Source: Azolla caroliniana
Taxonomy: Eukaryota > Plantae > Polypodiophyta
DNA length: 64,000 nucleotides
NCBI GenBank assembly: GCA_043228905.1
Contig: JBHGNT010000005.1
Location: 23,002,001-23,066,000, forward strand
Direction of reading: 5' to 3'
The position numbers were made by a program, and so were the translations under genes. The notes under the pieces are model-generated. The model ran no database searches. It saw only the letters and a program-made list of their open reading frames with translations, and was not told the origin of the DNA. Of this stretch, positions 14,342 through 54,696 are shown one piece after another. Within the stretch, counting starts at the first letter, position 1; every line of letters starts with the position of its first letter.

Positions 14342-17300
14342 TGTTGTGAATCAGCGTCTTCGATTCACCTTCTCCGTCCGGCCACAACCGAGTAATCGCG
14401 GATCAATGCAGCAGAAAATAGGAAATACAGAGAAAGACGCGATACACAAGGATTAACGTGGAAAACCCTATACGGGAAAAACCACGGGAGTGCGAGACTC
14501 CAAACCAAACTATGCACAGAGAAATATACAATGGCGAGCTGCAAGGTAACGACCTTGAACTCGCTGTCCTCGCCACAGGCGGCGGAAATACACAGAGGCG
14601 TCTACCTCTTCGTCTCTCTCTCGCTCTATCTCTCTCTCTCTCTCTCTCGGCTGCTTCCTCTTCACTCCTCTTAAGTGGAAAAACAGAAAATTGAGTAGCA
14701 ACATAAACTGTTTGCCCTAAGTCATATTTATACACATATGACTTTCGGGCTATTTACAAATATAGCCTCAAGGGCCCTTGGCAAACATATTCACAAATAT
14801 GTCCCCGCATCCGGATCTCTCTCCGGGTACATTCGTCATCCGGTTCCGTAACCGGGGTCTTCATCATCCGGATCCGTATCCGGGTACTCTTCATCATCCG
14901 GATCCGCATCCGGGTACACTTCATCCGGCTTCATGCCGGGTGCTCTTCATCATCCGGTTCCGTAACCGCAACCGGGCTTGCCGTCATTTATCTCCGGGGA
15001 CATCCCATCCGGAGGGACCGAAATCCCAACAAACTCCCCCTTCACTTCGGCATGGGATGTCTCTCCAATCCGATTCTCTTCCGGCATGCTTCCAGCTTGT
15101 CGGGTGTGAGCACCTTGGTCAGCATATCCGACCCGTTCTCGTCCGTGTGGATCTTTGTCAGCACGAACTCCTGGTCTTCTATCCTTTCCCGGATCCAGTG
15201 ATATCTTCGCTGGATGTGCTTCGTCCGGGAGTGATAGGCCGCGTTCTTCGCAAGGTGGATTGCACTTTGACTGTCGCAGTAGAGTCGGTACTCCTCCTGC
15301 CGGATACCGAGCTCTCTAATGAAGTCCTTCATCCATATTACTTCCTTGCCGGCTTCAACAGCTGCCATGTACTCCGCCTCCGTGGTTGACAACGCAACCG
15401 TCTTCTGCAGCCTCGACTGCCACGAAACGGCTCCCCCTGCATACGTCATCACATACCCTGACGTGGACCGGCTGGTATCTGCATCAGCCGACATATCCGA
15501 ATCGGTGAAACCGTCGAGTTCGGGTTTACCGGAGCCGAATCGGAGGCACACATTCGCTGTGCCCTTCAGGTATCGGAGTATCCACTTGATCGCGTTCCAA
15601 TGCTCTTTGCCGGGATTGCTCATGTACCGGCTCACCACTCCGACTGCATATCCGATGTCCGGTCTCGTACACACCATGGCGTACATCAAGCTCCCGACGG
15701 CTGAGGCATACGGCACTTTCATCATATCCTCCTTTTCAGCCTTTGTCTTGGGGCTTTGCTTGCTGGACAACTTGCAGTTTGCCGGGAGGGTCGATCCGAC
15801 CGGTCTTGCCTCCGACATGTTGAACCGGTGAAGCACCTTCGTCACGTACTTCTCCTGTGACAGCCACAACTGCTTCTTCTTCCGGTCCCGGATGATGTGC
15901 ATCCCTAATATTTGCCTCGCCTGACCCAGGTCCTTCATTGAGAAGGTTCGGTGAAGAGCCTTCTTCAGCATCCGTATCTTGACCTGGTCCCGTCCGACGA
16001 TCAACATGTCGTCCACGTACAGGAGGAGTATTAGAAAGTCTCCTCCTTCGAACTTCTTCACAAACACGCAGTGGTCGGACTGCGTTTTGAGGTACCCTTC
16101 GTCGGTCATGAAGGAGTCGAACTTCCGGTACCATTGCCGGGGAGCCTGTTTCAGTCCGTAAAGGCTCTTCTTCAACCGGCATACCAGGTGCTCCTTCCCT
16201 TTCTTCTCGAATCCTTCCGGTTGCTGCATGTATATCTCTTCTTCGAGGTCACCGTGAAGGAATGCCGTCTTCACGTCCATCTGTTCTACCTCGAGGTCCA
16301 TGCTTGCCGCTATGCTCAGCACCGTCCGAATGGAGGTCATCTTCACCACCGGGGCGAATATCTCGTCGAAGTCGACGCCCTTCTTCTGCTGAAACCCCTT
16401 CACCACGATCCTGGCTTTGTATCTCGAGGGGTTTCCGGCATCTCCCGGTTTCAGCTTGAACACCCACTTGTTTCGAAGTGCCCGCTTTCCTTTCGGCAAC
16501 TCCACAAGTTCATATGTGTGGTTCTCATGCAGGGAATCCATCTCGTCCTGCATGGCACTCAACCACCTGCGGCTCTTGGTGTCATGCTTTGCTTCTTCAA
16601 AGCTCTCCGGTTCCCCCTCGTCGGTTAGCAGCACGTGCTCTGGTTCCGGAAATCTCCGGGGGGCCCTTCTCTCTCTTAGAGGATATCTCCGTTCCGGAGC
16701 TTCGGTAACCGGTTCTTCCGATTCTTCTTCATCCGAATCCATTTCGGGATCGGGGCCGGTTCCGATATCATTTTCATCTTCTTCGGCCGGTTCTGTTTCT
16801 TCACCGTCTTCGGCCGGATCCTCGAGTGCTAACCGGTCCCTTGCCGGTCGGGACTGCTCCTCGTAGAGTTGATTCTCACCGGTCGACTTGGAGCTCTTCA
16901 TCTTCTTCTCCGACTCCCAGTCGGCAAGTGTCTTGTCCTCCATGAAGATGATATCACGACTCCTGAATATCTTCTTGTCGACCGGGTCCCATACTCGGTA
17001 GCCGAACTCGTCGTCGCCGTAACCGAGGAGTATGCATGGACGGGTCTTTGGATCTAGCTTTCCTCTCCGGTCCTTTGCCACATGCACATATGCGAGACAC
17101 CCGAACACCTTCAGATGCCGGTAGGATACTTCCCTACCGGTCCACACTCTCTGCGGCGTGTCTCCGTCCAAAGGTACTGAGGGTGATCTATTTATCACAT
17201 ATGTCGCCGTCGACATTGCCTCAACCCAAAATCCCTTGGGTAATTTCGCATGCGCCAGCATACTCCGGACCCTCTCCATTATGGTCCGGTTCATCCTCTC

Positions 17301-19834
17301 GGCCAGCCCGTTCAGTTCCGGCGTCTTCGGCACTGTAAACTCGAGTCGGATTCCCTTCGAGCGACAGTACTCCTGGAACTGCCCCCGGTATTCCCCTCCG
17401 TTATCCGCTCGTATCGCTTTCAGCTTCTTGCCGGATTCTCTTTCCACTCTTGCATGGAGTTCTTTGAAGACGGACAACACTTGGTCCTTTGTCTTCAACG
17501 GTGCCGTCCACAGTCTTCGGCTGTGATCATCTATGAAGGTTACGAAGTACTGGGCTCCGCCATGTGACTTCGTTTCTACCTGACACACATCAGTGTGCAC
17601 CAACTCCAATGGTGCGCCACGTCTCGTCGGTGGCCTTGAGTGGAAAGAGGTTCGGTTCTGCTTACCGGCCAGGCAATCGGTGCACTTCTCCAGGTGCACA
17701 TGCTTCACTGGAATAAGGTTGTCTTCTGCAAGCCTCTTCATCCCTTTCTCACTCATGTGGCACAGTCTCTTGTGCCACAGCTCACCGGCAGTGTCGGCTG
17801 CCACGTTCAGCTCCTCCGGACATAGCCGGGAATTCATCAGGTACAGTGTGTTGACCTTCCGGGCCCGAGCCACTATCAGGCTCCCCTTGCTGAACTTCAT
17901 GACACCGTTCCGGATGCTACCCGTGTAGCCTTCATCATCTAGCCTCCCAGCCGAGATCAGGTTCAATCGGACCTCCGGAACGTGTCGCACATCCTTCAGC
18001 AGCATCTTGCATCCGGTTGATGTCATCAGCCACACGTCTCCTATGCCGGCAATCCGGCATGTACCTTCATTTCCCATCCGGACACAGCCGTGCTCACCGG
18101 CTGTGTAGGATGAGAAGTATTTCTTCTCCGGGGTCAGATGGAACGATGCTCCGGAATCGACCACCCAGGTCATCTCCTCACCGGCAAGGTTCAGCTCCGT
18201 CTCTTCGGTAATGAGCATTATCTCTTCTTCACTTGCCGCGAGTGCTGTCGTTCCTTTCCGGTCCTGCCCTCGCCGATCCGGACCTCTCCGGTCCGTGGCT
18301 CCCCGGTATGCACCGTTTCTCTCCGGTGACTTCTTCGAATCGGTGTCGTCGGCTCCGTTGTCTTTTCGGTAATGCCGACAATTCTTCCGGAAGTGCCCCG
18401 GCTTCCCACAGTGGAAGCATGTGGGTCTTCCTCTTGATTGCGACCGGGTCCCCGACTTCTCCCGTCTTTGCGGACTCCGGTTCCATTGTCTTCCCCGTTC
18501 CGATTCGGTAAGCAGCGCCTTCGAGTCGGAGGCCGGTTCCTTATCTCTCCGACGCGCTTCTTCATTTAGAATACTTGTCTTTACCGTTTGTAGAGACAAG
18601 TTGTCTTCGGTGCAGGAGGTGCTGAGAGTCACCACCAAGTTCTCCCAGCTTTCCGGCAATGTACACATCAGGATGATGGCTTGCATTGCATCCTCCAACG
18701 GGAACTTGATCGCCGCAAGCTGATTCACGAATCCCATGAACGTGCTTACGTGTTCCACCATACTCTCGCCGTCCCGGTACTTGAGATTCACTATCTTCCT
18801 CATCAGGGAGGTCCGGTTCAACGCATTCTTCCTCTCGTAGAGGCCCGACAGCTTCTTCCACATCTCGTATGCGTTGGTGTCGTTCGCCACGTGTTGTAGT
18901 ACGCTTACATCGACATATTGTCGGATCGTCGCTACGGCTTTCCGGTTCAGGAGCTTCCACTCCGACTCAAGTACCCCTTTCGGTATTTCCGACCTGTCAA
19001 TCGGTTCGTACAGGTCCCGAACAATCAGAAGATCCTCCATCTTGATCTTCCAGTCGGCGTAATTCTGTGCATTCAGCACCATCATCATCGGCTGTGCGCT
19101 GCCGCCGCCTTCCATTTTCTGCAACAGTCGCTCTGATACCAGTTTGTTGTGAATCAGCGTCTTCGATTCACCTTCTCCGTCCGGCCACAACCGAGTAATC
19201 GCGGATCAATGCAGCAGAAAATAGGAAATACAGAGAAAGACGCGATACACAAGGATTAACGTGGAAAACCCTATACGGGAAAAACCACGGGAGTGCGAGA
19301 CTCCAAACCAAACTATGCACAGAGAAATATACAATGGCGAGCTGCAAGGTAACGACCTTGAACTCGCTGTCCTCGCCACAGGCGGCGGAAATACACAGAG
19401 GCGTCTACCTCTTCGTCTCTCTCTCGCTCTATCTCTCTCTCTCTCTCTCTCGGCTGCTTCTTCTTCACTCCTCTTAAGTGGAAAAACAGAAAATTGAGTA
19501 GCAACATAAACTGTTTGCCCTAAGTCATATTTATACACATATGACTTTCGGGCTATTTACAAATATAGCCTCAAGGGCCCTTGGCAAACATATTCACAAA
19601 TATGTCCCCGCATCCGGATCTCTCTCCGGGTACATTCGTCATCCGGTTCCGTAACCGGGGTCTTCATCATCCGGATCCGTATCCGGGTACTCTTCATCAT
19701 CCGGATCCGCATCCGGGTACACTTCATCCGGCTTCATGCCGGGTGCTCTTCATCATCCGGTTCCGTAACCGCAACCGGGCTTGCCGTCATTTATCTCCGG
19801 GGACATCCCATCCGGAGGGACCGAAATCCCAACA
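14342..19834 (-). mobile_element. complete, young Ty1/copia LTR retrotransposon (element 2)
   Basis: 690-bp LTRs 14342-15031 and 19145-19834 (one visible mismatch, 14658/19461); 5-bp TSD TGCTC; tRNA-Met PBS 19141-19130; PPT 15044-15032. Confidence 0.97.
15042..19115 (-). CDS. intact copia Gag-Pol polyprotein (~1357 aa from ATG 19115)
   Basis: uninterrupted ORF: CCHC, DSGAS, integrase DDE, RT MDVKTAFLHG...LYVDDM, RNase H DSD...EAEY...CDSQ. Confidence 0.95.
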   Translation of the reverse strand: MEGGGSAQPMMMVLNAQNYADWKIKMEDLLIVRDLYEPIDRSEIPKGVLESEWKLLNRKAVATIRQYVDVSVLQHVANDTNAYEMWKKLSGLYERKNALNRTSLMRKIVNLKYRDGESMVEHVSTFMGFVNQLAAIKFPLEDAMQAIILMCTLPESWENLVVTLSTSCTEDNLSLQTVKTSILNEEARRRDKEPASDSKALLTESERGRQWNRSPQRREKSGTRSQSRGRPTCFHCGKPGHFRKNCRHYRKDNGADDTDSKKSPERNGAYRGATDRRGPDRRGQDRKGTTALAASEEEIMLITEETELNLAGEEMTWVVDSGASFHLTPEKKYFSSYTAGEHGCVRMGNEGTCRIAGIGDVWLMTSTGCKMLLKDVRHVPEVRLNLISAGRLDDEGYTGSIRNGVMKFSKGSLIVARARKVNTLYLMNSRLCPEELNVAADTAGELWHKRLCHMSEKGMKRLAEDNLIPVKHVHLEKCTDCLAGKQNRTSFHSRPPTRRGAPLELVHTDVCQVETKSHGGAQYFVTFIDDHSRRLWTAPLKTKDQVLSVFKELHARVERESGKKLKAIRADNGGEYRGQFQEYCRSKGIRLEFTVPKTPELNGLAERMNRTIMERVRSMLAHAKLPKGFWVEAMSTATYVINRSPSVPLDGDTPQRVWTGREVSYRHLKVFGCLAYVHVAKDRRGKLDPKTRPCILLGYGDDEFGYRVWDPVDKKIFRSRDIIFMEDKTLADWESEKKMKSSKSTGENQLYEEQSRPARDRLALEDPAEDGEETEPAEEDENDIGTGPDPEMDSDEEESEEPVTEAPERRYPLRERRAPRRFPEPEHVLLTDEGEPESFEEAKHDTKSRRWLSAMQDEMDSLHENHTYELVELPKGKRALRNKWVFKLKPGDAGNPSRYKARIVVKGFQQKKGVDFDEIFAPVVKMTSIRTVLSIAASMDLEVEQMDVKTAFLHGDLEEEIYMQQPEGFEKKGKEHLVCRLKKSLYGLKQAPRQWYRKFDSFMTDEGYLKTQSDHCVFVKKFEGGDFLILLLYVDDMLIVGRDQVKIRMLKKALHRTFSMKDLGQARQILGMHIIRDRKKKQLWLSQEKYVTKVLHRFNMSEARPVGSTLPANCKLSSKQSPKTKAEKEDMMKVPYASAVGSLMYAMVCTRPDIGYAVGVVSRYMSNPGKEHWNAIKWILRYLKGTANVCLRFGSGKPELDGFTDSDMSADADTSRSTSGYVMTYAGGAVSWQSRLQKTVALSTTEAEYMAAVEAGKEVIWMKDFIRELGIRQEEYRLYCDSQSAIHLAKNAAYHSRTKHIQRRYHWIRERIEDQEFVLTKIHTDENGSDMLTKVLTPDKLEACRKRIGLERHPMPK

Positions 19835-43273: not shown

Positions 43274-45101
43274 TGACTTGGTCATCACCGGCGCCGACCT
43301 AGGTGAAATCGACTGCGTGAAGCTCCAGCTTGCGGCATCGTTCGACATGAAGGATCTGGGGGACCTTCATTACTTCCTCGGGATCGAATTGATCCGTACC
43401 CCCAAAGGCATATTGATCAACCAACGTCATTACGTGCTAGGTATGCTCTTCAAACTCGGGATGGCCGACTGTAAGTCCGTCTCGACTCCTCTAGACAGAA
43501 CCATCAAGCTTCGTCCCGATACGGGAGAGGTATGCGACCCGACGAGGTTCCGAAAAATTGTCGGAAGCCTCATATACTTGACCATCACCCGACCCGACCT
43601 CAGTTATCTGGTCGGGGTGATCAGTTAGTTCATGGCGCGACCTACCGAGGAGCACCTTCAGTGTGCGCAACACGTACTGTGGTACGTAAGTGGCACTAAG
43701 GACCGTGGACTGCTATATCGGACCGGTGCAGCCGCACAGTTAGTCGGCTACACCGATGCTAATTGGGTTGGCAACGCCGCCGATCGCCGATCCACGTCCG
43801 GATACACGTTCTCCCTCGGGAGTGCCGCGATCGCGTGGAGCAGTAAGAAGCAGCCGACAGTTGCACTATCGAGCACCAAAGCTGAGTACCGAGGAGCGGC
43901 TGTCGCGACATGCGAAGCTATATGGTTGAAGCGGCTACTTAAGGACCTGCAAGTGGAGGTGTCAGATCCGACGACGATCTACTGCGACAACCTTAGCAGC
44001 ATCCAGCTCGCGAAGAACCCCGTTTTCCACGCACGGACCAAGCACATTGAGGTGCACTACCATTTCGTCCGTGAGCGTGTCCTTTCCGGTGAAGTCGAAC
44101 TTCAATACGTGCCGACGGATCGGCAGATTGCCGACATCTTCACCAAGCCTCTTGGTCTGGACAAGTTGCGGCAATTCTCAGGTGCGCTCAGCTTGCATCA
44201 CCTCGACGTGCCAAACTTGAGGGGGAGAACAGTCCCGAACGACCAAGCAAGGCAGCAGGAAAGGAGCGGAGACCGCGACACCGAGTCGGTTGTCGAGTTC
44301 GACTTCGGATCGGCTGAAGAAGCCGAGGGCGGACCCGCGGAAAAGTCCGGAAGCGGACAGAAAGGGAGCAGCCGAAGGAGAGAGCCGAAGCCAACCACCC
44401 ATGGGGGAGATGACGCCATCGAGGGCGAGAAGACCGAAGACGAGTTGGAGACAGCCAACTCGGACGAGAGCGAAAACCGATCGGAGGTAGCCGAGTCGGT
44501 TCAGATGTTTGATTCATACACGTTGAATCAACCGAGGCCCAAGCGGAAGAAAAGGCAACAGAAGAAGTGTTGACACCACTACAGCAGAAGAGCTAATAAG
44601 GGTCACATGAGCAGATAAGCCGACCGGAAGGGTCGAAGCGCGCAGAGTCGAACAGGTCGAGGAGCGCGAGCGAGGTGTGAAGCCAGGAGGAACCAGAGCT
44701 GTGAAGATCCCAAAGAGCCTCAAGTTGAGCTTGAGGGGGAGTGTTGAGAGACAAGCTCAACATGGGCCGGATCGGCTGAAGAAGCTGAGGACCGGATCGG
44801 TTGGGACCGATCGGTTAGACCGTTAGGAAAGATATTCCGTGAGGAATATATTTGGGAGTTAGTGTAGGAGCTCTTAATGAGCATTGAAGTACTGTCAGTA
44901 CTTCGGTCAGTCCTTCTAGGACTTGTACAAAGTGTTCATTGAACACATATATGTGTTTTTGTTTTTTGTCTTTCATAGTAATACATATTCTCTCTCTCGG
45001 TCTCTCCCGCGTATACTGTGTAAGCTCAAGCTCTCCATTAAACCTGAGTGTTCTTCCTTCTGTTCTGGCTTTATACTTGCTTCCGCACGCTACTTTTTAC
45101 A
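43274..45101 (+). mobile_element. copia element B (same family as A): RT end, RNase H, 3' extension and 3' LTR (44742-45101)
   Basis: MKDLGDLHYFLG, TRPDL, YTDANW, SSTKAEY, CDN, DIFTKPL; PPT GAGGGGGAG 44733-44741; LTR TG...CA. Confidence 0.9.
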
Positions 45102-45416
45102 AAATGTAAGACATCATCTATTCACACATTCTTACCCAAATTGAAATGAAATAAAATAAATCATTTTGTTATTGCAATGTCTACTTAAAAAATTTATTAC
45201 AATAAAGGTTGCCCTTATAAAGACCAACTATATAAAAAGAAAACCCTAAGAAGTTCATTTTAGGCTATAAATTTCATGTCGTTTCTATCTTCAATGTTGG
45301 ACCTGTATTATAACATGTAACAACAAAGGCAAGAAAACTTAATATACATGGAAGTAAATAATAGCTTAAAGAAATCAAAATATATATTTGGAATACTGTA
45401 GGTTTATATTTGGTTT

Positions 45417-48400
45417 TTACTCTTTTCTCCTTTTCCTGTTAAAATAAAAGGCATAAATATTAAGTTACTTTAATATATATTATATATGTACATGTATGCA
45501 AGTATATAATTCAAAACAGCTTATATATACATACCTGAATTTCATTTCCAAAAGAAAATCGTTGAAAACTTTACAATCGCTTTCGTCTAACAGATAATTA
45601 TCACATTTTGCATTATATGTGAGGTTCGCTAATCCAATAATTGACTCAAAGTCAACCATTTTTATATCTGTCAAATCATATGCAAATAATCAACTCCCTT
45701 TAATCTTCCTATACCAACCAAGTTGTAATTGAACATCTTCAAGTCTATCCATCAAGTCAATTCCTCTCTTGTACTCCACAAATTTATTTCCAATCTTTCT
45801 TCGCATCCTTTGTACTCGTCCTAAGTACCAAACAACATTTTCATTTGATATTCCTTTTCTTTTGGGTCTTGTTGAATTAACATCTTCTTCAATAAAGAAT
45901 ACAACACAATTTGAACCAATCCCAATTAGGTTCCCATTTCCATTTAGGAAATTATTTGCATTCTCACATGAGTAGAAGACCCCTTCTCTTACACATGTGA
46001 GTCTATCCTTTGACAATGTTGGATTACCATTTAGATGACTCACAAGTGTTGATTTAAATATAATCTTATCATCCACTTGAACAAATGAAGAGACTTTAGA
46101 GTTCACATTGTTGTCATCCAATATAGCATCCAATTCATGGCGAATTTCACTTATTGCAATCTCATCGTCATTTTCCACACATTCATGCATTGTTAAGTTT
46201 TTATTGTGTTCAACACATTCTTCATCATCTTTCTCTCCATATATATAACTCAAGGATTGTTTTGCCTCAATCCCGGGATAATTCCACCATTGCCCATTGT
46301 GTTTAGGCTTCATATTTAACGACTCACATAAAATTTGGGCTTCTTTTAAACCTTCTTTAAGTGCAAAAACAAGTTGATCATCATTTGAGATATCAATGTA
46401 GTCTTGTAAGTTTGCAAGAGGCTTGCCATGCATGAAATTGAGTTTGGACCATATTGATTCTTGCTTCTTATGAGCTCTTGGAAAAACCAATCCACTATCC
46501 TTGCACTCAAATTTGGCAAGCTTGTTTACATTTCCACTACAATGCAAAACATCTGGTATATCAAATGCATGCTCCATACCAATCATTCCCCCTATTTTAC
46601 TAAAAAATATCTCAGCTCCATCAAACCCTGTGAGATGCAATGGACATTCTAATTGTGGATAAAAGTCACGAAACGTTTTTATAAGTAAAACTACAAAGTG
46701 ACAAGATATTTGTACATCCAAAAATGTTTCCCGACTAATGAAATTACTTTTTTAATTATAAATTGAATTATTTAGAATCCATAATCTCCATATTTGAAAG
46801 AAGAATGCAACTTTAGGTGCAAGTACCACACGCTTGAATAAGCTCTCATGAGGGGATAGAAAAATATCAATATAGTCACCTAATATATGCAAGTATACAT
46901 GTTGTGTTCCCAAAGCACCTCTTTCTCTTACTTTGACACCTTCTCCACCTTGGTATAACATCTTTAAACAATTAGTAACATTTCTACTTGCAATTCTTTG
47001 GGCTCCAACCCAATTTTGTCTATCGTCTCTCTTAATATCACATTACCTTAAGCCATGTGCATCAATAGAGAAGTTATTATATACCAATGACACATGATTC
47101 AATGTGATTCATACATCTCCGATTACTAATGATCTTGAGGGATTATCTAGTGCATTCACAAGTTTCTTTCCATTATGGATGAAATCTTGATCATGAAGAC
47201 AACTTACCATATCATTATGCATTTGACATGTGAAGATCCAACCATCCCAAGGCAATTTATATCTTAAGCATATGCTTGGGGTTAAGTAATCTTGAAGCAT
47301 AATCTTTCTTCTCCTACTATCTCCATCTAATGCATGTCCAACAATAGGCCCAATACTTGTGGAGAGGTGTTTTTCCCATAGAGTTTCCACTTCATTCCAT
47401 TGGCATTTTACAAAATCTGCATCAAAGCAATTACATGTACATTGTACAACCAATACTAATGGTGGAAGTTTAGGGTGAAGAGGATTCGCAATTAACACCC
47501 TAGCATAGTGCCCAACCACATAGTCTTTAAAGGAGCTAACAATGGTTTCATAACCAACATTAGAGTCACCCAACTTTATCATACATGATGAGACACATTG
47601 ATGATTGGATGACTTCAGCCCACAAAAACCCCAAAAGTAAATCATTTGAGCTATCCCACTTAACATTCCGCTTAATCATAGTCTCATCCTTAGCAATAAT
47701 GAATGGAACCTTTGTTATAATGCCATGCACTCTTTTTTCATTTTCATAAATCTTAGCCACATCCTGGAATATATATTCATAGATCCCTGGAAGGAATTTA
47801 GTTGTCTTCCTCTCAACTCTCTTTGTAGTGCTTAATGATGGTTCATCTAAATTTTTAGAAACAAAGTCGTGTAATCTTGGTCCACCCCACATTTTTATCA
47901 TGACGAAAATTGCCTTAGACGTGTCTTTAAATCGTTGTCCATGTGGCTTTCGAGTAAGGTTTTGTGCAACATCTGTCAAGAAATCCCATAATGCATTCTT
48001 TCCACCAAATTTTCCAGCTCGATGAGCCTCAATAATGTTATTACAAAATCTTCGAACATCCTTCTGTTCCACACTCTCAAGGGATGCTTCCTTGAGAGTC
48101 ATTACCTTTACCAAAAGCATTGCAACTTTGCAAGCTAGCCACCATATTTGTCTATGAGCACGACGGATAGTTTGCTTAGAACTTGAAATTTCCTTTCTTG
48201 TCTCTTCTTGAGTAAGATAATCTAGTCGCCTACCCTCCCCAGTTCCTCGATTACCTCTTTTAACTTTAGCCCTACGCTCCCTATACACCCTCATACGGAA
48301 ATCATTACATTTTGGAATTTCATTACATTTTTCACATGTAAGATTATGAAAGGGTTCTTCAAGCTTCAATACTCTTTTACAATCAAAATGGCGGAAACAT

Positions 48401-49751
48401 CCATCAATAACACACTCTTGCATCTCATACATCACAACAGCTTTTGTGTAAGGCTCAGAGAACCATAAGGCTCCATGATTTTGATCGATGAGAAATGATT
48501 TTACATGTATTTCTTCATTATTTATCACTATGTTGTTATTCCAATATCCCCAACACAATAGTGGCAAACCAAAATAATGTGGAGTAGAGAACTCACATTC
48601 TTGACTAGACGAAGGTCGCAAGGTTGAAACAAGAAATTTGCTCAAGGTTTGTTGATTTGAAGGTAAAGCTTCTTGTTTTCGTGGACAACCTGGAAATCCA
48701 CTCATTATTGGTGTACCAGCATGTCGAACCATCTCCATTGCCTTTAGATGGGTCTTGGATTGTATGTGTTGAGACAAAATTGTTAACAAATCACTCCATG
48801 GAGGGCATAATGGCAACCAAGATCCATCAATCTTGCATTTTACCTTCACCATTGCCTTATCTTTATATCCATGAAATGTTGCCTCTATTAAATTAAATTC
48901 TGCATCTATAAAAAACATTTTTCACGTATATTAGCATATTATTCATAACTACAACATTAAGGTTTAAAGTACATTTTTGGGAAAAAAAAATGAAGGTTTA
49001 AAGTACAAATATGCTTACAACTTGTAGTGTCATTAAAAGTCTTCAGAACTTCCAACGAAGACTTGATATAGGCCTCGTCATCTATTTTAGATAAGTTTAT
49101 TGATTCATCTTGTTGGTTTAACCCCATTGGAGCATAATATAGTTTTTCATGACTTTGGTTCTTAATATGACTTCTAAAAATATTATTAAGACACACATTT
49201 GCTACTTTTGCTTCCATAGAACCAGCACCATAGGGTTCTCCACACTCATTACACCATAATCTTATGACTATTTTTCCAAAAAAATCCTCAACCTTCAACT
49301 CAAATTTATCATCTTGAGGAATTGTAGCATTGCTTAATTTTACACGTATCCTATTACATTCTATCATCCATTTACCTAAAACATCTCTAGGAATCTTATC
49401 CTTGATTGTTTCAATTGGAGATGTATCTTTAAAATTGTCCTCGGCTTGACTCAACAATGAACCCTCAACATTAGTGCATGATTCTTTTGAAGAGACTCTT
49501 TGTTGTTTATCAATACTAGGCTTGATATAGACTTTATTTTCTTTTAAATGTCATTTCTCTTCTTGTTTCCCATTCAAAATATTATTTTTTGTGTACACAA
49601 AGGAAAATGGTTCATCAAATATACCGTCCTCAATTATTTCCACTCGAATCTTTGCATATGTAAGAGTTCCTCTCAGACTTACAATGCCCAAAGGTTTATC
49701 TTCAACATCCCTCTCATGTTCAAACACTTCAATGATAGATTCTTCATCCAT
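45417..49751 (-). pseudogene. spliced P-element-superfamily-like DDE transposase (~1370 codons; exons 49751-49019, 48905-45535, 45435-45417)
   Basis: motif order DETMIK..KWD...D.LLGF, LDGDSRRR, QDFIHNGKKLVN, DRQNW, DGAEIFFSKIGG; GT-AG introns restore the frame; 5 stops and 1 frameshift (~47625). Confidence 0.7.
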
Positions 49752-49779
49752 TATCTACACATAGAATGGCCCACCTATC

Positions 49780-49886
49780 CGTTTTCATATAACCATACAT
49801 CATATATATGTGTGTATGTGTGCATTGTCAATGTGGTATGCATGTGTGTATGTATGTACATATTGTATTGTATTTTATTTAATTGT

Positions 49887-49920
<34 letters not shown>

Positions 49921-50917
49921 CATATCGTGTTATGTGTGTATATGTGTATGTATGTATGTATGTATGTATGTATGCATTATATGTGTATATAGGTATTGTA
50001 TGGATTGCATTGCATGTGTATATAGGTATGTGTGTAGTAGTGTATTATGTACATATTGTATTGTATTTTATTTAATTGCATTTATTGTATGTATAGCATG
50101 TATGTTGTGTGTTATGTTTGTGTGTGTGTATGTATGTTCCATACAACATATATATGTGTCCATATGTATATATGTATATTCTACACATGTGTGTGTGTGT
50201 GTTGTATTGTATTCCATTTGTATGCAATATGTATGTATGTGTGTAGATATTGTATTGTATGTATGTGTAAATGTGTATGTAAGTGTATATATGTGTATAT
50301 AGATATGTGTGTATGTATGTACATATTGTATTGTAATGTATTAATTTCGTTTATTGTATGTATTGTATGTATGGCCTATGTGTATGATTGTATATGTTGT
50401 GTGTGTGTGTGTGTGTGTGTAAGTGTATATATGTGTATATAGGTATGAATGTATGTATGTACATATTGTATGGTAATGTATGTATGGCCTGTGTGTATGA
50501 TTGTATATGTTATGTGTGTGTGTGTGTCTAAGAATTTATGTGTTGGTTTATGTATGTATGATGTTTGTACTTATGTGTACCTGTAAAATATTTGTAGAGT
50601 AGTTGTGGCAGCCCTGACAGAGAATAATGGTGAGCAAAGCGGCACAAGGCGAGTGGCGGCGGTGGCGGCGGCAATACGAGAACAGAGGCAACAGCCAAAC
50701 AAGAATGGAGGCGACAAAACGAGATCAAAGGCAACAAAAGGAGGACAAAAACAACAAGGGGAGAAGAGGTGACGACGGCAATGAGGAGAGAAGAGGAGGG
50801 AGCTAAGGAGGAGGCGGCAAAACTCTAAATGAAAAAAAGATGAATGTTTGAATGTTATGTTTAGTATGAATGTATGTTATGTATGTATGTGCACATAATG
50901 TATGCATGTATGAATGA

Positions 50918-50955
<38 letters not shown>

Positions 50956-51095
50956 GTATGTAATGTATGCATAAAATATGTATGCTTGCATGAATAAACA
51001 TGAATGAATGTACATATGTAATATGTAATGTATGTATATTTGTATGTGTGTGTGGATATTTGTTTGTAATATGTATGTATAATATATACATATAC

Positions 51096-51127
<32 letters not shown>

Positions 51128-51395
51128 GTGTGTATATATCTAATATATGTATGTATGTAAGTATGTGTATGTACATGTAGCAATGTATAAAAGACTATAT
51201 ATGTATGTCCATGTACATATGTGTATGCATATATGCATATGCAAATGTACATGATTCAATGTGTATGGAGATGTGATTGTAATATGTGCATAATATATAT
51301 GTATATATATGTGTATGTATATGTAGCAATGTATAAATGAATATATGTATATCCATGTACGAATGTACATATGTGTATGTATAAAAGACTATATG

Positions 51396-51427
<32 letters not shown>

Positions 51428-51532
51428 CTACATATAGTCTTATATATATATATATACGTATGTGTGTATATATCTAATATATGTATGTATGTACGTATGT
51501 GTATGTACATGTAGCAATGTATAATAGACTAT
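49780..51532. repeat. (TA)/(TG)/(TATG) compound microsatellite tract
   Basis: directly visible low-complexity sequence. Confidence 0.95.
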
Positions 51533-54500
51533 CCCTGCAACATTTGGAAGAGAGAAGACCACATTCGAGTTATATAAGTGCTCGAGTGGTTCAAGTAGGG
51601 AATCAAATATTGGACTTACAAAAGATTTCTGTTGATTTTAACTATCACAATACATCATCCACATGGGCAGAATCGGGAGATAATGTCAACAAGTTGTTCT
51701 TTGCAGTGCATAATCATCATAAGTCATCAGCTAGGATATCTAGATTAAGATGTCCTGATGGCTCTTATACCACGGATCCTAGCCAGATGCGACAAATAGC
51801 CTCTGATTATTATGAAGCTTTGTTAAAAGCTAGACCATTTTCTGAGGCTGATATGGTTAAGAGGGACATTATATGGTCTAGGGTTCAGAATAGGGTTTCT
51901 GGAAATCTTTTACGTTGTCTTTTACAACCATTAAGTACTCAAGAGGTTTTTAAAGCAGTAAAAGCCCAAGAATGGAAGGAGGGTTTAATCTATATGATTC
52001 CTAAAACAAGTGGACAGTTAGAAGAGCTTAGCCAGTGGAGACCAATTACTTTGTTGAATGTTATTTATAAGATATTAGCAAAAACGATAGCTAGACGGTT
52101 ACAACCTTATCTTTCGGAGTTGATTCATGATACCCAGACAGGTTTTTTGCAAGAGCGAAGTATTTTTGATAATATTATTCTCTTTTGGGAAATGGTGACC
52201 ATCGCTGAAGTGCAGAAGCAAGATCTGGCGGTGTTATTTCTTGATTTTGAAAAAGCTTACGACAGAGTGGACTGGGATTTTATGGAGGGAACACTCGTTA
52301 GGATGGGTTTTCCAAGTAATTGGATACGAGGAGTTTCAGCATTATATCGTAATGCAAGTAGTTCTCTATTATTTGCAGGGGACATTGGTAGGAATTTTTT
52401 TATTTCAAGATTTGTACGCCAGGGATGTCCACTTGCTCCTTTCCTGTTTTTGTTAGTATCCGAAGCATTCTCTGTACATTTAAATTCTCCATATGTAAAT
52501 ATTAAAGGTTTAGCACTACCAGTAGCAAACGCAAATGTGGATTGTGAATTCGCTGATGATACAGCTTTATATGTTCAGGCCTCACATGGTAATTTGTTTC
52601 ATGTGCAAAAGGCCGTGGATGATTTCTCAGATGCATCGGGTGCATTGATAAATTGGGATAAGTCATCAGGTTTTTGGGTCGCTTCGGGAGATCCGCCAGT
52701 TAATGTACCCTCTTTAGGATTCACATGGATACCTCAAGGTCAGTCCATTAGGTATTTAGGTTGTCGAGTGGGTGTGGGATTAAAGTCAGAAGATATGATT
52801 GCACCCTTATTGTTAAGATTAAGAAATAAATTAGTATATTGGAATAAAGAAAAATTATCTTTAGCAGGACGTGTAGTTGTAGCTAATGCGGTGTTGTTGT
52901 CCTCGATTTGGTATATAGCATCTACATGGCTGTTTTCTAGGTCAATAATGTTGAAAGTTCAACGTTTAGTACGGAATTTTATTTGGGGGAACAATAGGTC
53001 AGTCAATCCTGTAGCAAAGGTAGCTTGGTCTATCCTGATACAACCTAAACAAAAAGGTGGTTTAGGTTTGATTGATCCATTTATGCAAAGCAAAGCTTTA
53101 CTTACTAAACATGTTGTTAGGAGTTTATTGCCAGGACAGGAGTTATGGAAAAAGCTATGGATGCAACATCTATATAAGGTCAAGCCTTCGGTAGGTGGTC
53201 AATGGAAGGAGAGTCTTAGATGGTTCTTTAATGCAGATTTCCAGCTACCTAAGTCCAATGATGGATCATTGCGTTTCTTCAATGGAATTTTTCGGGCATG
53301 GGAAACTCTTCGGCATGCGCTTGTTTTCTTGCCACCGAAAAGCTATCATCAATTTATGCGTCAACCATTGATATGGAATCCTTTATTTACTGATGAAGCT
53401 GCATGTGTTTTGGGTTTACGCCCTAGGTTATCATGGGCTGCAATGGATAGTGGACCAGCTCGTACGGTTGCGGATTGGATAAGGTTTATGCAGTCCTCTA
53501 CGTTGGAGCAAAGTAATAGGTTATCGAACTTAAGAGGGGCTAAGATCATGTTATCACAATTGTCCAGGGTGTATCAGGTCACAGTGCCTACATTGCAATT
53601 CGATCATTTTCAGAGTTGGTACGGTATGTTCTCGACACTCAATATACTTATAGCAGCTCGGTTATATGATCAAAATGGTAGCATTTATTTTTATGAAGTG
53701 TTGGACAATGGTAGGTTGATACTAGTGGATGAGGAGTCTCAAATCATGTTGGCTGCAAAGCAATTGCCAGTGCGAGTAATTGCTAGATTATATAAAAATA
53801 TATATATCGATCCTAGTCCACTAATAGTTAATTTTTCATCTCATATTTCGGTGTTAGACTCTAAACCTATTGATGACCTGCAGTGGGATCCAACGGATTA
53901 TGGTTGGAAATTATCCATATCTGACTCTTCGACTAAGATCCTTCCTTTTTTCAAATATTCAGTAGCGTTTGGTAGGAATTTTATGTTGAGGCAGACCGAG
54001 CCAATACCTGCTGGAAAAAAGTATTGGGAGGAAGGTAATGTTTCATCTACTAATATGGTTATGTTTTGGAAACAGTTTTGGTCTATTAAATGCATGAATA
54101 AGATATTGCATTTTCGATGGTTGATGATTCATTATGCATTGCCAATAGGTCATTTATTGAGGGGATCGGTGAGTAATCGGTCATGTATTATGTGTGGGTT
54201 TGCGGATGAGACATTGCATCATGCATTTTGGGAATGTGTATCCGCAAAAAGTTTTTGGTGTCGAATTCTTAGGCTTCTAGGCCGTAAGTATAAGTCTGCT
54301 ATTTTTACGTGGGGTGCAGTCTTTTGGGGAATGTTGGATCAACAAAGGGCTTTTTATCATTATAATCATTCTTCATTGTCTTTATATGTAAGAAGTTTTC
54401 AGGTATATTCTACTTCAGGATCCTTGCAGGGAGTCGAGTTCTTCTCGCGGAGCTATGTTTGGCAGATTGTCTCCTCGTTGTCTCTAAGGGTTCTTTGGAA

Positions 54501-54696
54501 AGCTCGGTGCTCCAAGTTATACAATGATGAAGACATTCACGTTGTGGATCAGGTAAAGTCTTTTTGGAATTTATTAGTACATTCGGTTAAAGGTGAGTAT
54601 GACAGGTATAAAGGCTATGGAAACACAGCCATTCGAAAAAGAAAGAGATTACGACGAGTTTGGTCAGCTATTCCTATAATGTTAGATGCGAGATAA
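51533..54696 (+). CDS. LINE ORF2 remnant (RT + zf-RVT, endonuclease missing)
   Basis: WRPITLLN, LDFEKAYDRV, RQGCPLAP, FADD, IRYLG, GGLG, CIMC...ETLHHAFWEC; the upstream ATG at 51481 comes from flanking microsatellite. Confidence 0.85.

Follow-up and report, generated by a model that had tools for sequence, protein, structure and literature searches.

The genome of the fern Azolla caroliniana contains, within the 64,000-nucleotide stretch analyzed here (the window; assembly GCA_043228905.1, contig JBHGNT010000005.1, forward-strand positions 23,002,001–23,066,000), what is very probably a dead, truncated copy of an autonomous cut-and-paste transposon from a deep and previously unmodelled branch of the P element/THAP9 type. 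The retained body of this copy lies on the minus strand at 45102–50159 and comprises a 5′ minisatellite, a transposase pseudogene of two exons and a portion of the 3′ untranslated region (UTR); both termini are missing. In itself the copy is an ordinary relic, dead and terminally truncated. A preliminary description, made from the letters of the stretch, had recognized an intron-containing gene for a divergent DNA transposase of the P superfamily. This is supported by a P element fold, by a set of invariant residues and by the 8 bp target-site duplications (TSDs) that flank complete relatives. The family probably branches deeply within the P superfamily; it departs from P in the strict sense in having no THAP domain and no Pfam match at threshold.

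The transposase gene is broken into open reading frames (ORFs) on the minus strand at 49751–49551, 49457–48957, 48918–47566, 47666–47109, 46961–46752, 46721–45690 and 45674–45480. Joined, they form one gene of ~1370 codons (49751–45480), and the ORF positions agree with those in the preliminary description, which had proposed this single frame. Relatives are matched by the pieces in the same order (E values of 1e-137 to 1e-180), and the pieces therefore represent one real gene rather than chance frames. A 450-amino acid piece finds relatives at 1e-137, a 343-amino acid piece finds 40 relatives at values up to 1e-180, and pieces 2 to 6 are collinear in independent contigs by tblastn. An uninterrupted relative of 1051 amino acids, P0049, aligns to 48561–45552 at 46–47% identity, straight through the window's stops, with a sole frame switch at ~47626–47630. 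The five in-frame stops reported earlier are all real (TGA at 49551, TGA at 47109, TAA at 47043, TAA at 46752 and TGA at 45690). The +1 frameshift, previously placed near 47625, is due to a single additional base in TTTTGGGGTTTTTGTGGG (~47626–47634, minus strand), a G/T homopolymer run just past ..DLLLGF. This base (47629) is lacking both in an intact sister copy (L015) and in the majority genomic contig of DNA run X1. At the positions of the 47109 and 45690 stops, the X1 majority sequence has W and R, respectively. Because of its five stops and one frameshift, the window copy cannot make the enzyme.

Exon 1 (49019–49751, minus strand; ~244 codons) encodes the N-terminal region and the first C2H2-like finger, is interrupted by the stop at 49553–49551 (W to TGA), and is homologous to exon A of two related loci, L001 and L003. 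Exon 2 (45480–48905, minus strand; ~1123–1140 codons, with four stops and the frameshift) encodes the second finger, a Cys-rich region, a helix-turn-helix (HTH), an RNase H core with an insertion domain, and a C-terminal domain. Between them lies intron 1 (48906–49018, minus strand; 113 nt), which starts with GTAAG, ends with AG, and leaves the exon junction in phase (T + AT = Tyr), as had been described. Comparison between copies gives good support for this predicted intron: in the sister copies L018 and L019, a 271-codon frame is open before it and a 1151-codon frame is open after it, and stops fall within it. A 34-nt indel relative to L015 also falls inside intron 1. A candidate second GT-AG intron at the extreme C terminus (45436–45534, minus strand) is possible and would alter only the last few residues. 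Relatives terminate 6–9 residues past F(N/S)DF, and the sister copies read through the region of this candidate to the same stop.

In an alignment of 30 core sequences of relatives (A1), the invariant residues are those singled out in the preliminary description: DET, DGD, D..H...K and the Glu of ..AEIFFSK. In P0049 numbering these are D306 and E307 (D-E-T), D425 and G426 (D-G-D), D471, H474, K478 and E657. In the window, the first catalytic Asp, on strand β1, is supplied by DETMIK (47671–47688, minus strand, as for all motifs that follow; invariant D/E in A1; model strand E102–110). The second, at the end of β4, belongs to DGDSRRR (47307–47327; invariant D226/G227 in A1; model strand E220–225). 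DFIHNGKK (47163–47186; invariant D272, H275 and K279 in A1) is the D(2)H..K motif with which the insertion domain opens, and DGAEIFFSK (46596–46622; invariant E458 in A1; model helix H455–464) carries the catalytic Glu on the helix after that domain. D(2)H is part of the P-superfamily signature (PMC8230255). Within the α-helical insertion domain lies DRQNW (47010–47024), which is conserved in A1 and invariant in alignment A3. It is one of two peptide patterns, derived from a closer 15-sequence set, that retrieved 58 related loci.

The fold was probed using the intact P0049 (46–47% identical to the window copy) rather than the broken window protein. The AlphaFold2 model of its core (residues 200–800, built on A1) has a mean predicted local distance difference test score (pLDDT) of 89.9 and a predicted template-modelling score (pTM) of 0.90. 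It is an RNase H fold with the acidic residues on the expected elements: the two Asp lie on β1 and at the end of β4, the D..H pair begins an all-helical insertion (model residues ~300–441), and the Glu sits on a helix thereafter. When the Protein Data Bank (PDB) was searched with Foldseek, the top match was the Drosophila P element transposase (6p5a_A; E value 2.3e-10, probability 1.0, TM score 0.74 by target), with Hermes (1.2e-3) and RAG1 (~1e-2) as the runners-up. VIA-align superposed 400 of 442 residues on chain 137–566 of 6p5a_A (Z score 24.6, root-mean-square deviation 3.1); Transib, RAG1 and Hermes gave Z scores of 11.2, 10.0 and 7.9. The insertion (GTP-binding) domain of the Drosophila enzyme (DmTNP), residues 339–528, lies inside the aligned range (PMC8230255). 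The spacing from D(2)H to E is 186 residues, compared with 192 in DmTNP and 199 in THAP9 (PMC8230255). By shape, the best match in the ESM Atlas is a basidiomycete cluster (TM 0.89). A rotifer 'THAP9-like' cluster, some members of which carry PF21787, PF12017 or PF21788, matches at TM 0.84 over 561 residues, and bona fide P/THAP9 clusters match at TM 0.65–0.67. The language-model search of the Atlas returned weak leads at 0.76–0.81.

Outside the catalytic core, the enzyme has domains of its own. The first zinc-finger-like CxxC...H..H motif (WCNECG ... SHIKNQSH, 49149–49256) falls in conserved columns of an N-terminal alignment of relatives (A2) and forms a confidently modelled small domain. 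The second (KCKIDG..LCP ... QHIQSKTH, 48748–48840) is found in A2 and in the model, and has weak fold matches. Fold matches for the fingers are weak overall (Z ∼4–5), the best being to U1/matrin-type C2H2 fingers. A Cys-rich β domain (LCWGYW ... CFRH..C ... C..C, 48277–48558), which ends in the basic FRMRVYRE..KRG, is the most conserved block of A2; it is modelled with pLDDT >90, and no fold match to it was found. The C-terminal domain (LSKDRLT ... GRVQRMRRK, 45795–46016) is conserved in the 40 relatives of its piece, with no Pfam match and no lead from the Atlas. The fingers and the Cys-rich domain presumably bind DNA, at sites near the element ends. Three relatives (P0105, P0114 and P0124) are single members with extra domains on the C-terminal side (a PTM/DIR17-like Tudor, a SAP and a C1 domain), which may be add-ons for chromatin or DNA targeting.

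Complete relatives provide the termini that the window copy lacks. L004 (7,543 bp) has the ends CTAGGGGGGTATAC... and ...GTATACCCCCCGGG and the TSD TCCTTATT; L010 (6,827 bp) has the ends CCCGGGGGGGGCACT and CTCGGGGGGGGCACT, with a subterminal CACGTG, and the TSD GCCACACG; and L023 (6,096 bp) has a perfect 16-nt terminal inverted repeat (TIR), CTCGGGGGGGTCACTC, and the TSD GTTTTCAT. In all three the TSD is perfect and 8 bp long, within the 7–8 bp that had been anticipated, the TIRs are 13–16 nt, and the inverted ends are of the CNCGGGG type. An unbiased scan of all loci for 8 bp TSDs with matching ends recovers exactly these three, together with one weaker candidate (L055/L060, GTCGGGA...) and AT-rich chance pairs. 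In L010, an ORF of 1307 codons is open, and the C-terminal domain is encoded by a separate ORF after it. L023 (L023:192-6287, a JGI metagenome contig) is apparently an intact, complete member with a single 1,498-codon ORF and no introns.

These termini also bear on whether the element belongs instead to hAT or Kolobok, the other D(2)H-type superfamilies, which we consider very unlikely. A [C/D](2)H motif is carried by hAT, and hAT elements make 8 bp duplications, a shared feature that does not discriminate. The structural comparison does: Hermes aligned with a Z score of 7.9 versus 24.6 for P, and neither the dimerization domain PF05699 nor any other hAT Pfam match was found. Kolobok (e.g., Xenopus XKol and T2 MITEs, miniature transposable elements with inverted repeats) resembles the family in having a DDE transposase, a motif of D/C(2)H type and no Pfam core model, and occurs widely among fungi and animals at low copy number; the absence of Pfam matches to Kolobok cores and their wide occurrence in fungi have been described (PMC5751038). 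However, the defining features of Kolobok are TTAA as target site, AG or AGG at the termini, and enzymes of 700–800 residues with THAP and H2CH motifs (PMC6004289). The TSDs of the relatives are 8 bp and not TTAA, their ends are CNCGGGG, and none of the TTAA targets, AG(G) termini, or THAP and H2CH motifs was seen in the family. No better hit to hAT, to Kolobok-type features or to a non-transposase fold emerged from any of these comparisons.

Several observations weigh against the main reading, a relic of a P-type transposon. No member has a THAP domain, as judged by Pfam and by fold searches with the N-terminal region. The spacing between the two catalytic Asp residues is 119 residues, versus 70–73 in P and THAP9. 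None of the Pfam P models tested (PF12017, PF21787, PF21788, PF21789 and PF12596) matches the window pieces or 23 full-length or near-full-length relatives at the curated threshold, and a profile of the core, run against PDB sequences, misses the P element chain 6P5A. The 5′ terminus and TSD of the window's own family are absent from all contigs examined. No RNA reads cover 45250–49900 in the polyA runs X21 and X22, which carry another species label. Finally, fold alone does not place the family inside P, because superfamilies with no solved structure (Kolobok and Novosib) could share it. Other sequence searches were equally silent: Pfam and NCBIfam returned nothing relevant for the window pieces, PDB sequence searches with the window pieces and with P0049 gave no P element match, and none of the relatives has a precomputed Pfam domain. 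At the curated thresholds, the only Pfam matches in relatives are the accessory SAP, Tudor and C1 domains, each in a single member.

The main remaining uncertainty in classification is Novosib, which is known here by description only. The family could be a separate named superfamily that has no Pfam model and an 8 bp TSD, Novosib being the obvious candidate, and that shares only the general P-type fold; we regard this as unlikely. Novosib (Repbase; Chlamydomonas) makes 8 bp TSDs and resembles the family in its occurrence in the green lineage and its want of a Pfam model. The window's family likewise has no Pfam match at curated thresholds and has an 8 bp TSD. Pfam similarity cannot be detected in the cores of Novosib, Kolobok, Sola, Zator, Academ and Dada (PMC5751038), and the original description of Novosib, going by an entry in the reference list of that paper, was from a green alga. 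Both P and Novosib MITEs have been reported in 'lower plants' by P-MITE (PMC3964958). Against Novosib, the faint sequence matches that do exist are specifically to P models. In a scan of the 30 core sequences at lax thresholds, PF12017 was matched in 2 of 30 (best E value 4.4e-5) and PF21787 was matched over the DET strand at 0.14, both below the curated threshold. Moreover, the match at TM 0.84 over 561 residues is to an Atlas cluster that partly carries P Pfam domains, which suggests continuity with P.

Among the known systems close to the family are the P element transposase (PDB 6P5A/6PE2) and human THAP9. The HTH, the RNase H domain and the helical insertion superpose on the P element enzyme over the 400 of 442 residues noted above. 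The DDE triad (D230, D303 and E531 in DmTNP) and D(2)H occupy the same places, at a similar spacing from D(2)H to E. The 8 bp TSD and short TIRs of the relatives are P-like, as are the internal-deletion derivatives of the window's family. Identity to the P element enzyme, on the other hand, is only 13% in the structural alignment. In place of THAP there are two C2H2-like fingers and the Cys-rich domain. The enzymes of the family are nearly twice as long (1300–1500 amino acids) and have the extra conserved C-terminal domain, and the loop between the two Asp residues is 45 residues larger. The ends read CATGATG... in the P element and CNCGGGG... in the family.

An intact enzyme of this kind consists, in order, of the two C2H2-like fingers with the Cys-rich domain, the HTH, the RNase H-like DDE core and the C-terminal domain. 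The core is interrupted after D(2)H by the all-helical insertion, laid out like the GTP-binding domain of the P element. The fingers and the Cys-rich domain would read sites near the element ends, cutting would take place at the short inverted ends C-N-C-GGGG..., which have a CACGTG motif ∼35 nt inside, and integration would proceed by an 8 bp staggered cut. The chemistry, and any GTP dependence, are predictions from the fold of the model.

The window copy is 93–96% identical at the nucleotide level to L015, L016, L018 and L019 from 45102 to 49657, 49990 or 50159. The preliminary description gave its extent as 45417–49751; the gene is indeed there, but the copy also includes, out to ∼50159, sequence from a degenerate (GTAT)n minisatellite that precedes the ATG. 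This array (49836–50523, identified with Tandem Repeats Finder) has 76- and 140-nt higher-order units and forms the 5′ region of the element. It is common to L016, L018 and L019 out to 49990–50159 and, because it is shared with these sister copies, is part of the element. Other assemblies break within the minisatellite, and the 600 nt upstream of the array in L019 are unlike both the window and the 3′ end.

On the 3′ side, the element stops at a breakpoint between 45101 and 45102 (45094–45109), where it meets Copia-like sequence whose last letters are ...TTTTTACA. Homology between the window and all six sister copies is lost exactly at 45102, yet the sister copies continue with one another for ∼690 bp to the family 3′ terminus (...GGAGTCCCCGGG). 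The window copy is therefore 3′-truncated. Position 45102 as the true 3′ end was rejected, since L015 and L008 continue together for ∼690 bp. The family terminus reads ...CACGTGATA..TATAGTGGAGTCCCCGGG (AAG in L015) and is followed by a different flank in each copy; five copies end ...GTGGAGTCCCC(GGG or AAG) before unlike flanks. The missing 3′ part is absent from the rest of the window. Neither the family terminus motif (≤3 mismatches) nor the pattern CNNGGGGGG occurs near the element in the window, the scan of the window for TSDs with TIRs gave nothing near the element, a search for TIRs as inverted repeats gave microsatellite noise only, and the reverse complement of the apparent 3′ end had no match. 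The earlier statement that TIRs are lacking thus holds for the window; it is explained by the cutoff at 45102, ∼690 bp before the family 3′ terminus. Since its 3′ end is missing and the window has no terminus motif, the copy is probably not movable by another copy either.

The surroundings of the copy contain other repeats. The Copia-type fragment at the breakpoint occupies 43560–45101 (plus strand) and ends ...TTTTTACA; its ORF at 43632–44573 resembles RNase H/C-terminal pol, and no long terminal repeat (LTR) partner was found for 44400–45101. Beyond the minisatellite, a G+C-rich piece of 300 nt (50528–50840) separates it from a second degenerate (GTAT)n/(ATGT)n array (50840–51346). Just past these lies a 1071-codon ORF (51481–54696, plus strand), by eye a reverse transcriptase of the long interspersed nuclear element (LINE) type (..FLDFEKAYDRVDW..), which may either delimit the element on its 5′ side or interrupt it there. 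Further away, a 1382-codon ORF (15042–19190, minus strand) has flanking repeats (14423–14488 and 19226–19291) that resemble what lies upstream of L008. It probably represents an LTR retrotransposon whose family has been hit by P-like insertions elsewhere.

Sister copies at 93–96% identity to the window were found on six contigs (L008, L015, L016, L017, L018 and L019). Relative to L015, the window copy is 96.7% identical, with an excess of transitions (34 G>A and 32 C>T). Among the indels, one in the coding region breaks the frame and one is a 3-nt in-frame change; the other three lie in the intron and the 3′ UTR. Exon 2 of L015 is open (P0236, 1122 amino acids), and both exons are open in L018 and L019. 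L017, L018 and L019 are 99.4–99.9% identical to one another yet have different 3′ flanks, which argues for recent amplification; these ENA contigs suggest that it was very recent and took place in the same or a closely related species. The homology of L017:1-1909 ends where intron 1 lies (window 48923); this copy is either 5′-truncated or holds an insertion at that point. DNA run X1 covers every bin of 45250–49900 with many short contigs, and contains internal-deletion joints at 45418/46978, 46805/49628 and 45411/46306; L008 is itself an internal-deletion derivative. Deletions of this kind are expected of a DNA transposon.

The preliminary description had also entertained a decayed domesticated gene, that is, a host gene derived from a P-like transposase. 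The intron and long conserved ORF of the window gene would suit such an origin, and THAP9-type domestications are known in animals (PMC8230255). We nevertheless consider it extremely unlikely, as the family is multicopy in X1 with internal-deletion joints, the six sister copies lie in different flanks and some are nearly identical to one another, the relatives bear TIRs and TSDs, and the window copy lies in nested retrotransposon sequence. The gene belongs to a transposon and is not a domesticated one.

When P0049 was used in an exhaustive HMMER search, it returned 2,483 clusters at E ≤ 1e-3, of which 1,165 reach E ≤ 1e-10, with members of up to 2,200 amino acids. Relatives occur in the fern Adiantum nelumboides (45–53% identity), the coral Porites evermanni and the brittle star Amphiura filiformis (39% over the core). 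The Atlas neighbors are mostly fungal, and the remaining relatives are metagenome or read-assembly contigs. The family thus spans ferns, a coral and a brittle star, and probably fungi too. Intron positions vary by lineage. In the window's family an intron precedes the second finger; the same intron, with a second one after DETAIKKRIR, is present in L001 and L003; and L010 and L023 have neither. The second intron is ∼110 nt long (L001:2157-2267 and L003:2380-2496, DETAIKKRIR | WNPKDD) and is absent from the window's family, L010 and L023. Such differences between lineages would fit long residence rather than recent transfer. Horizontal acquisition had been raised as another possibility in the preliminary description; nothing indicates a recent arrival, given the family-specific introns and the Adiantum nelumboides proteins at 45–53% identity.

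Elements of P type have little place in current accounts of land-plant transposable elements (TEs). In one review the TIR transposons of land plants fall into six superfamilies, and the P element appears only as an example from Drosophila (PMC9033089). In 2025, a survey that screened 1007 plant genomes for P using Pfam domains found recent activity in seven superfamilies only, P not among them (PMC12973397). The P-type MITEs that P-MITE assigned to 'lower plants' were recognized from end features alone (PMC3964958). Our literature search found no paper on P-type transposases in ferns or bryophytes, nor on this enzyme family. Plant surveys may lack P-type elements because standard domain searches miss the family. 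We see about an even chance that it constitutes an unrecognized, eukaryote-wide deep P branch (>2,400 protein clusters at 50% identity) in which THAP has given way to C2H2-type fingers and a C-terminal domain has been added, with intact, very recently amplified elements in ferns that Pfam-reliant plant surveys have missed.

What is new here is a P-type enzyme family that is abundant in a fern, with near-identical copies at different loci and open reading frames, and that is invisible to curated domain models. Its recognition fills a gap in the annotation of TEs in large fern genomes. The family also offers a natural comparison for P-type transposases that have no THAP domain, possibly with or without GTP. 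Compact intact elements, such as the 6.1 kb element with one ORF, are candidates for transposition assays, and L023 would make a good reference for them. If the placement is correct, land plants carry active P-type transposons that are not listed in current reviews.

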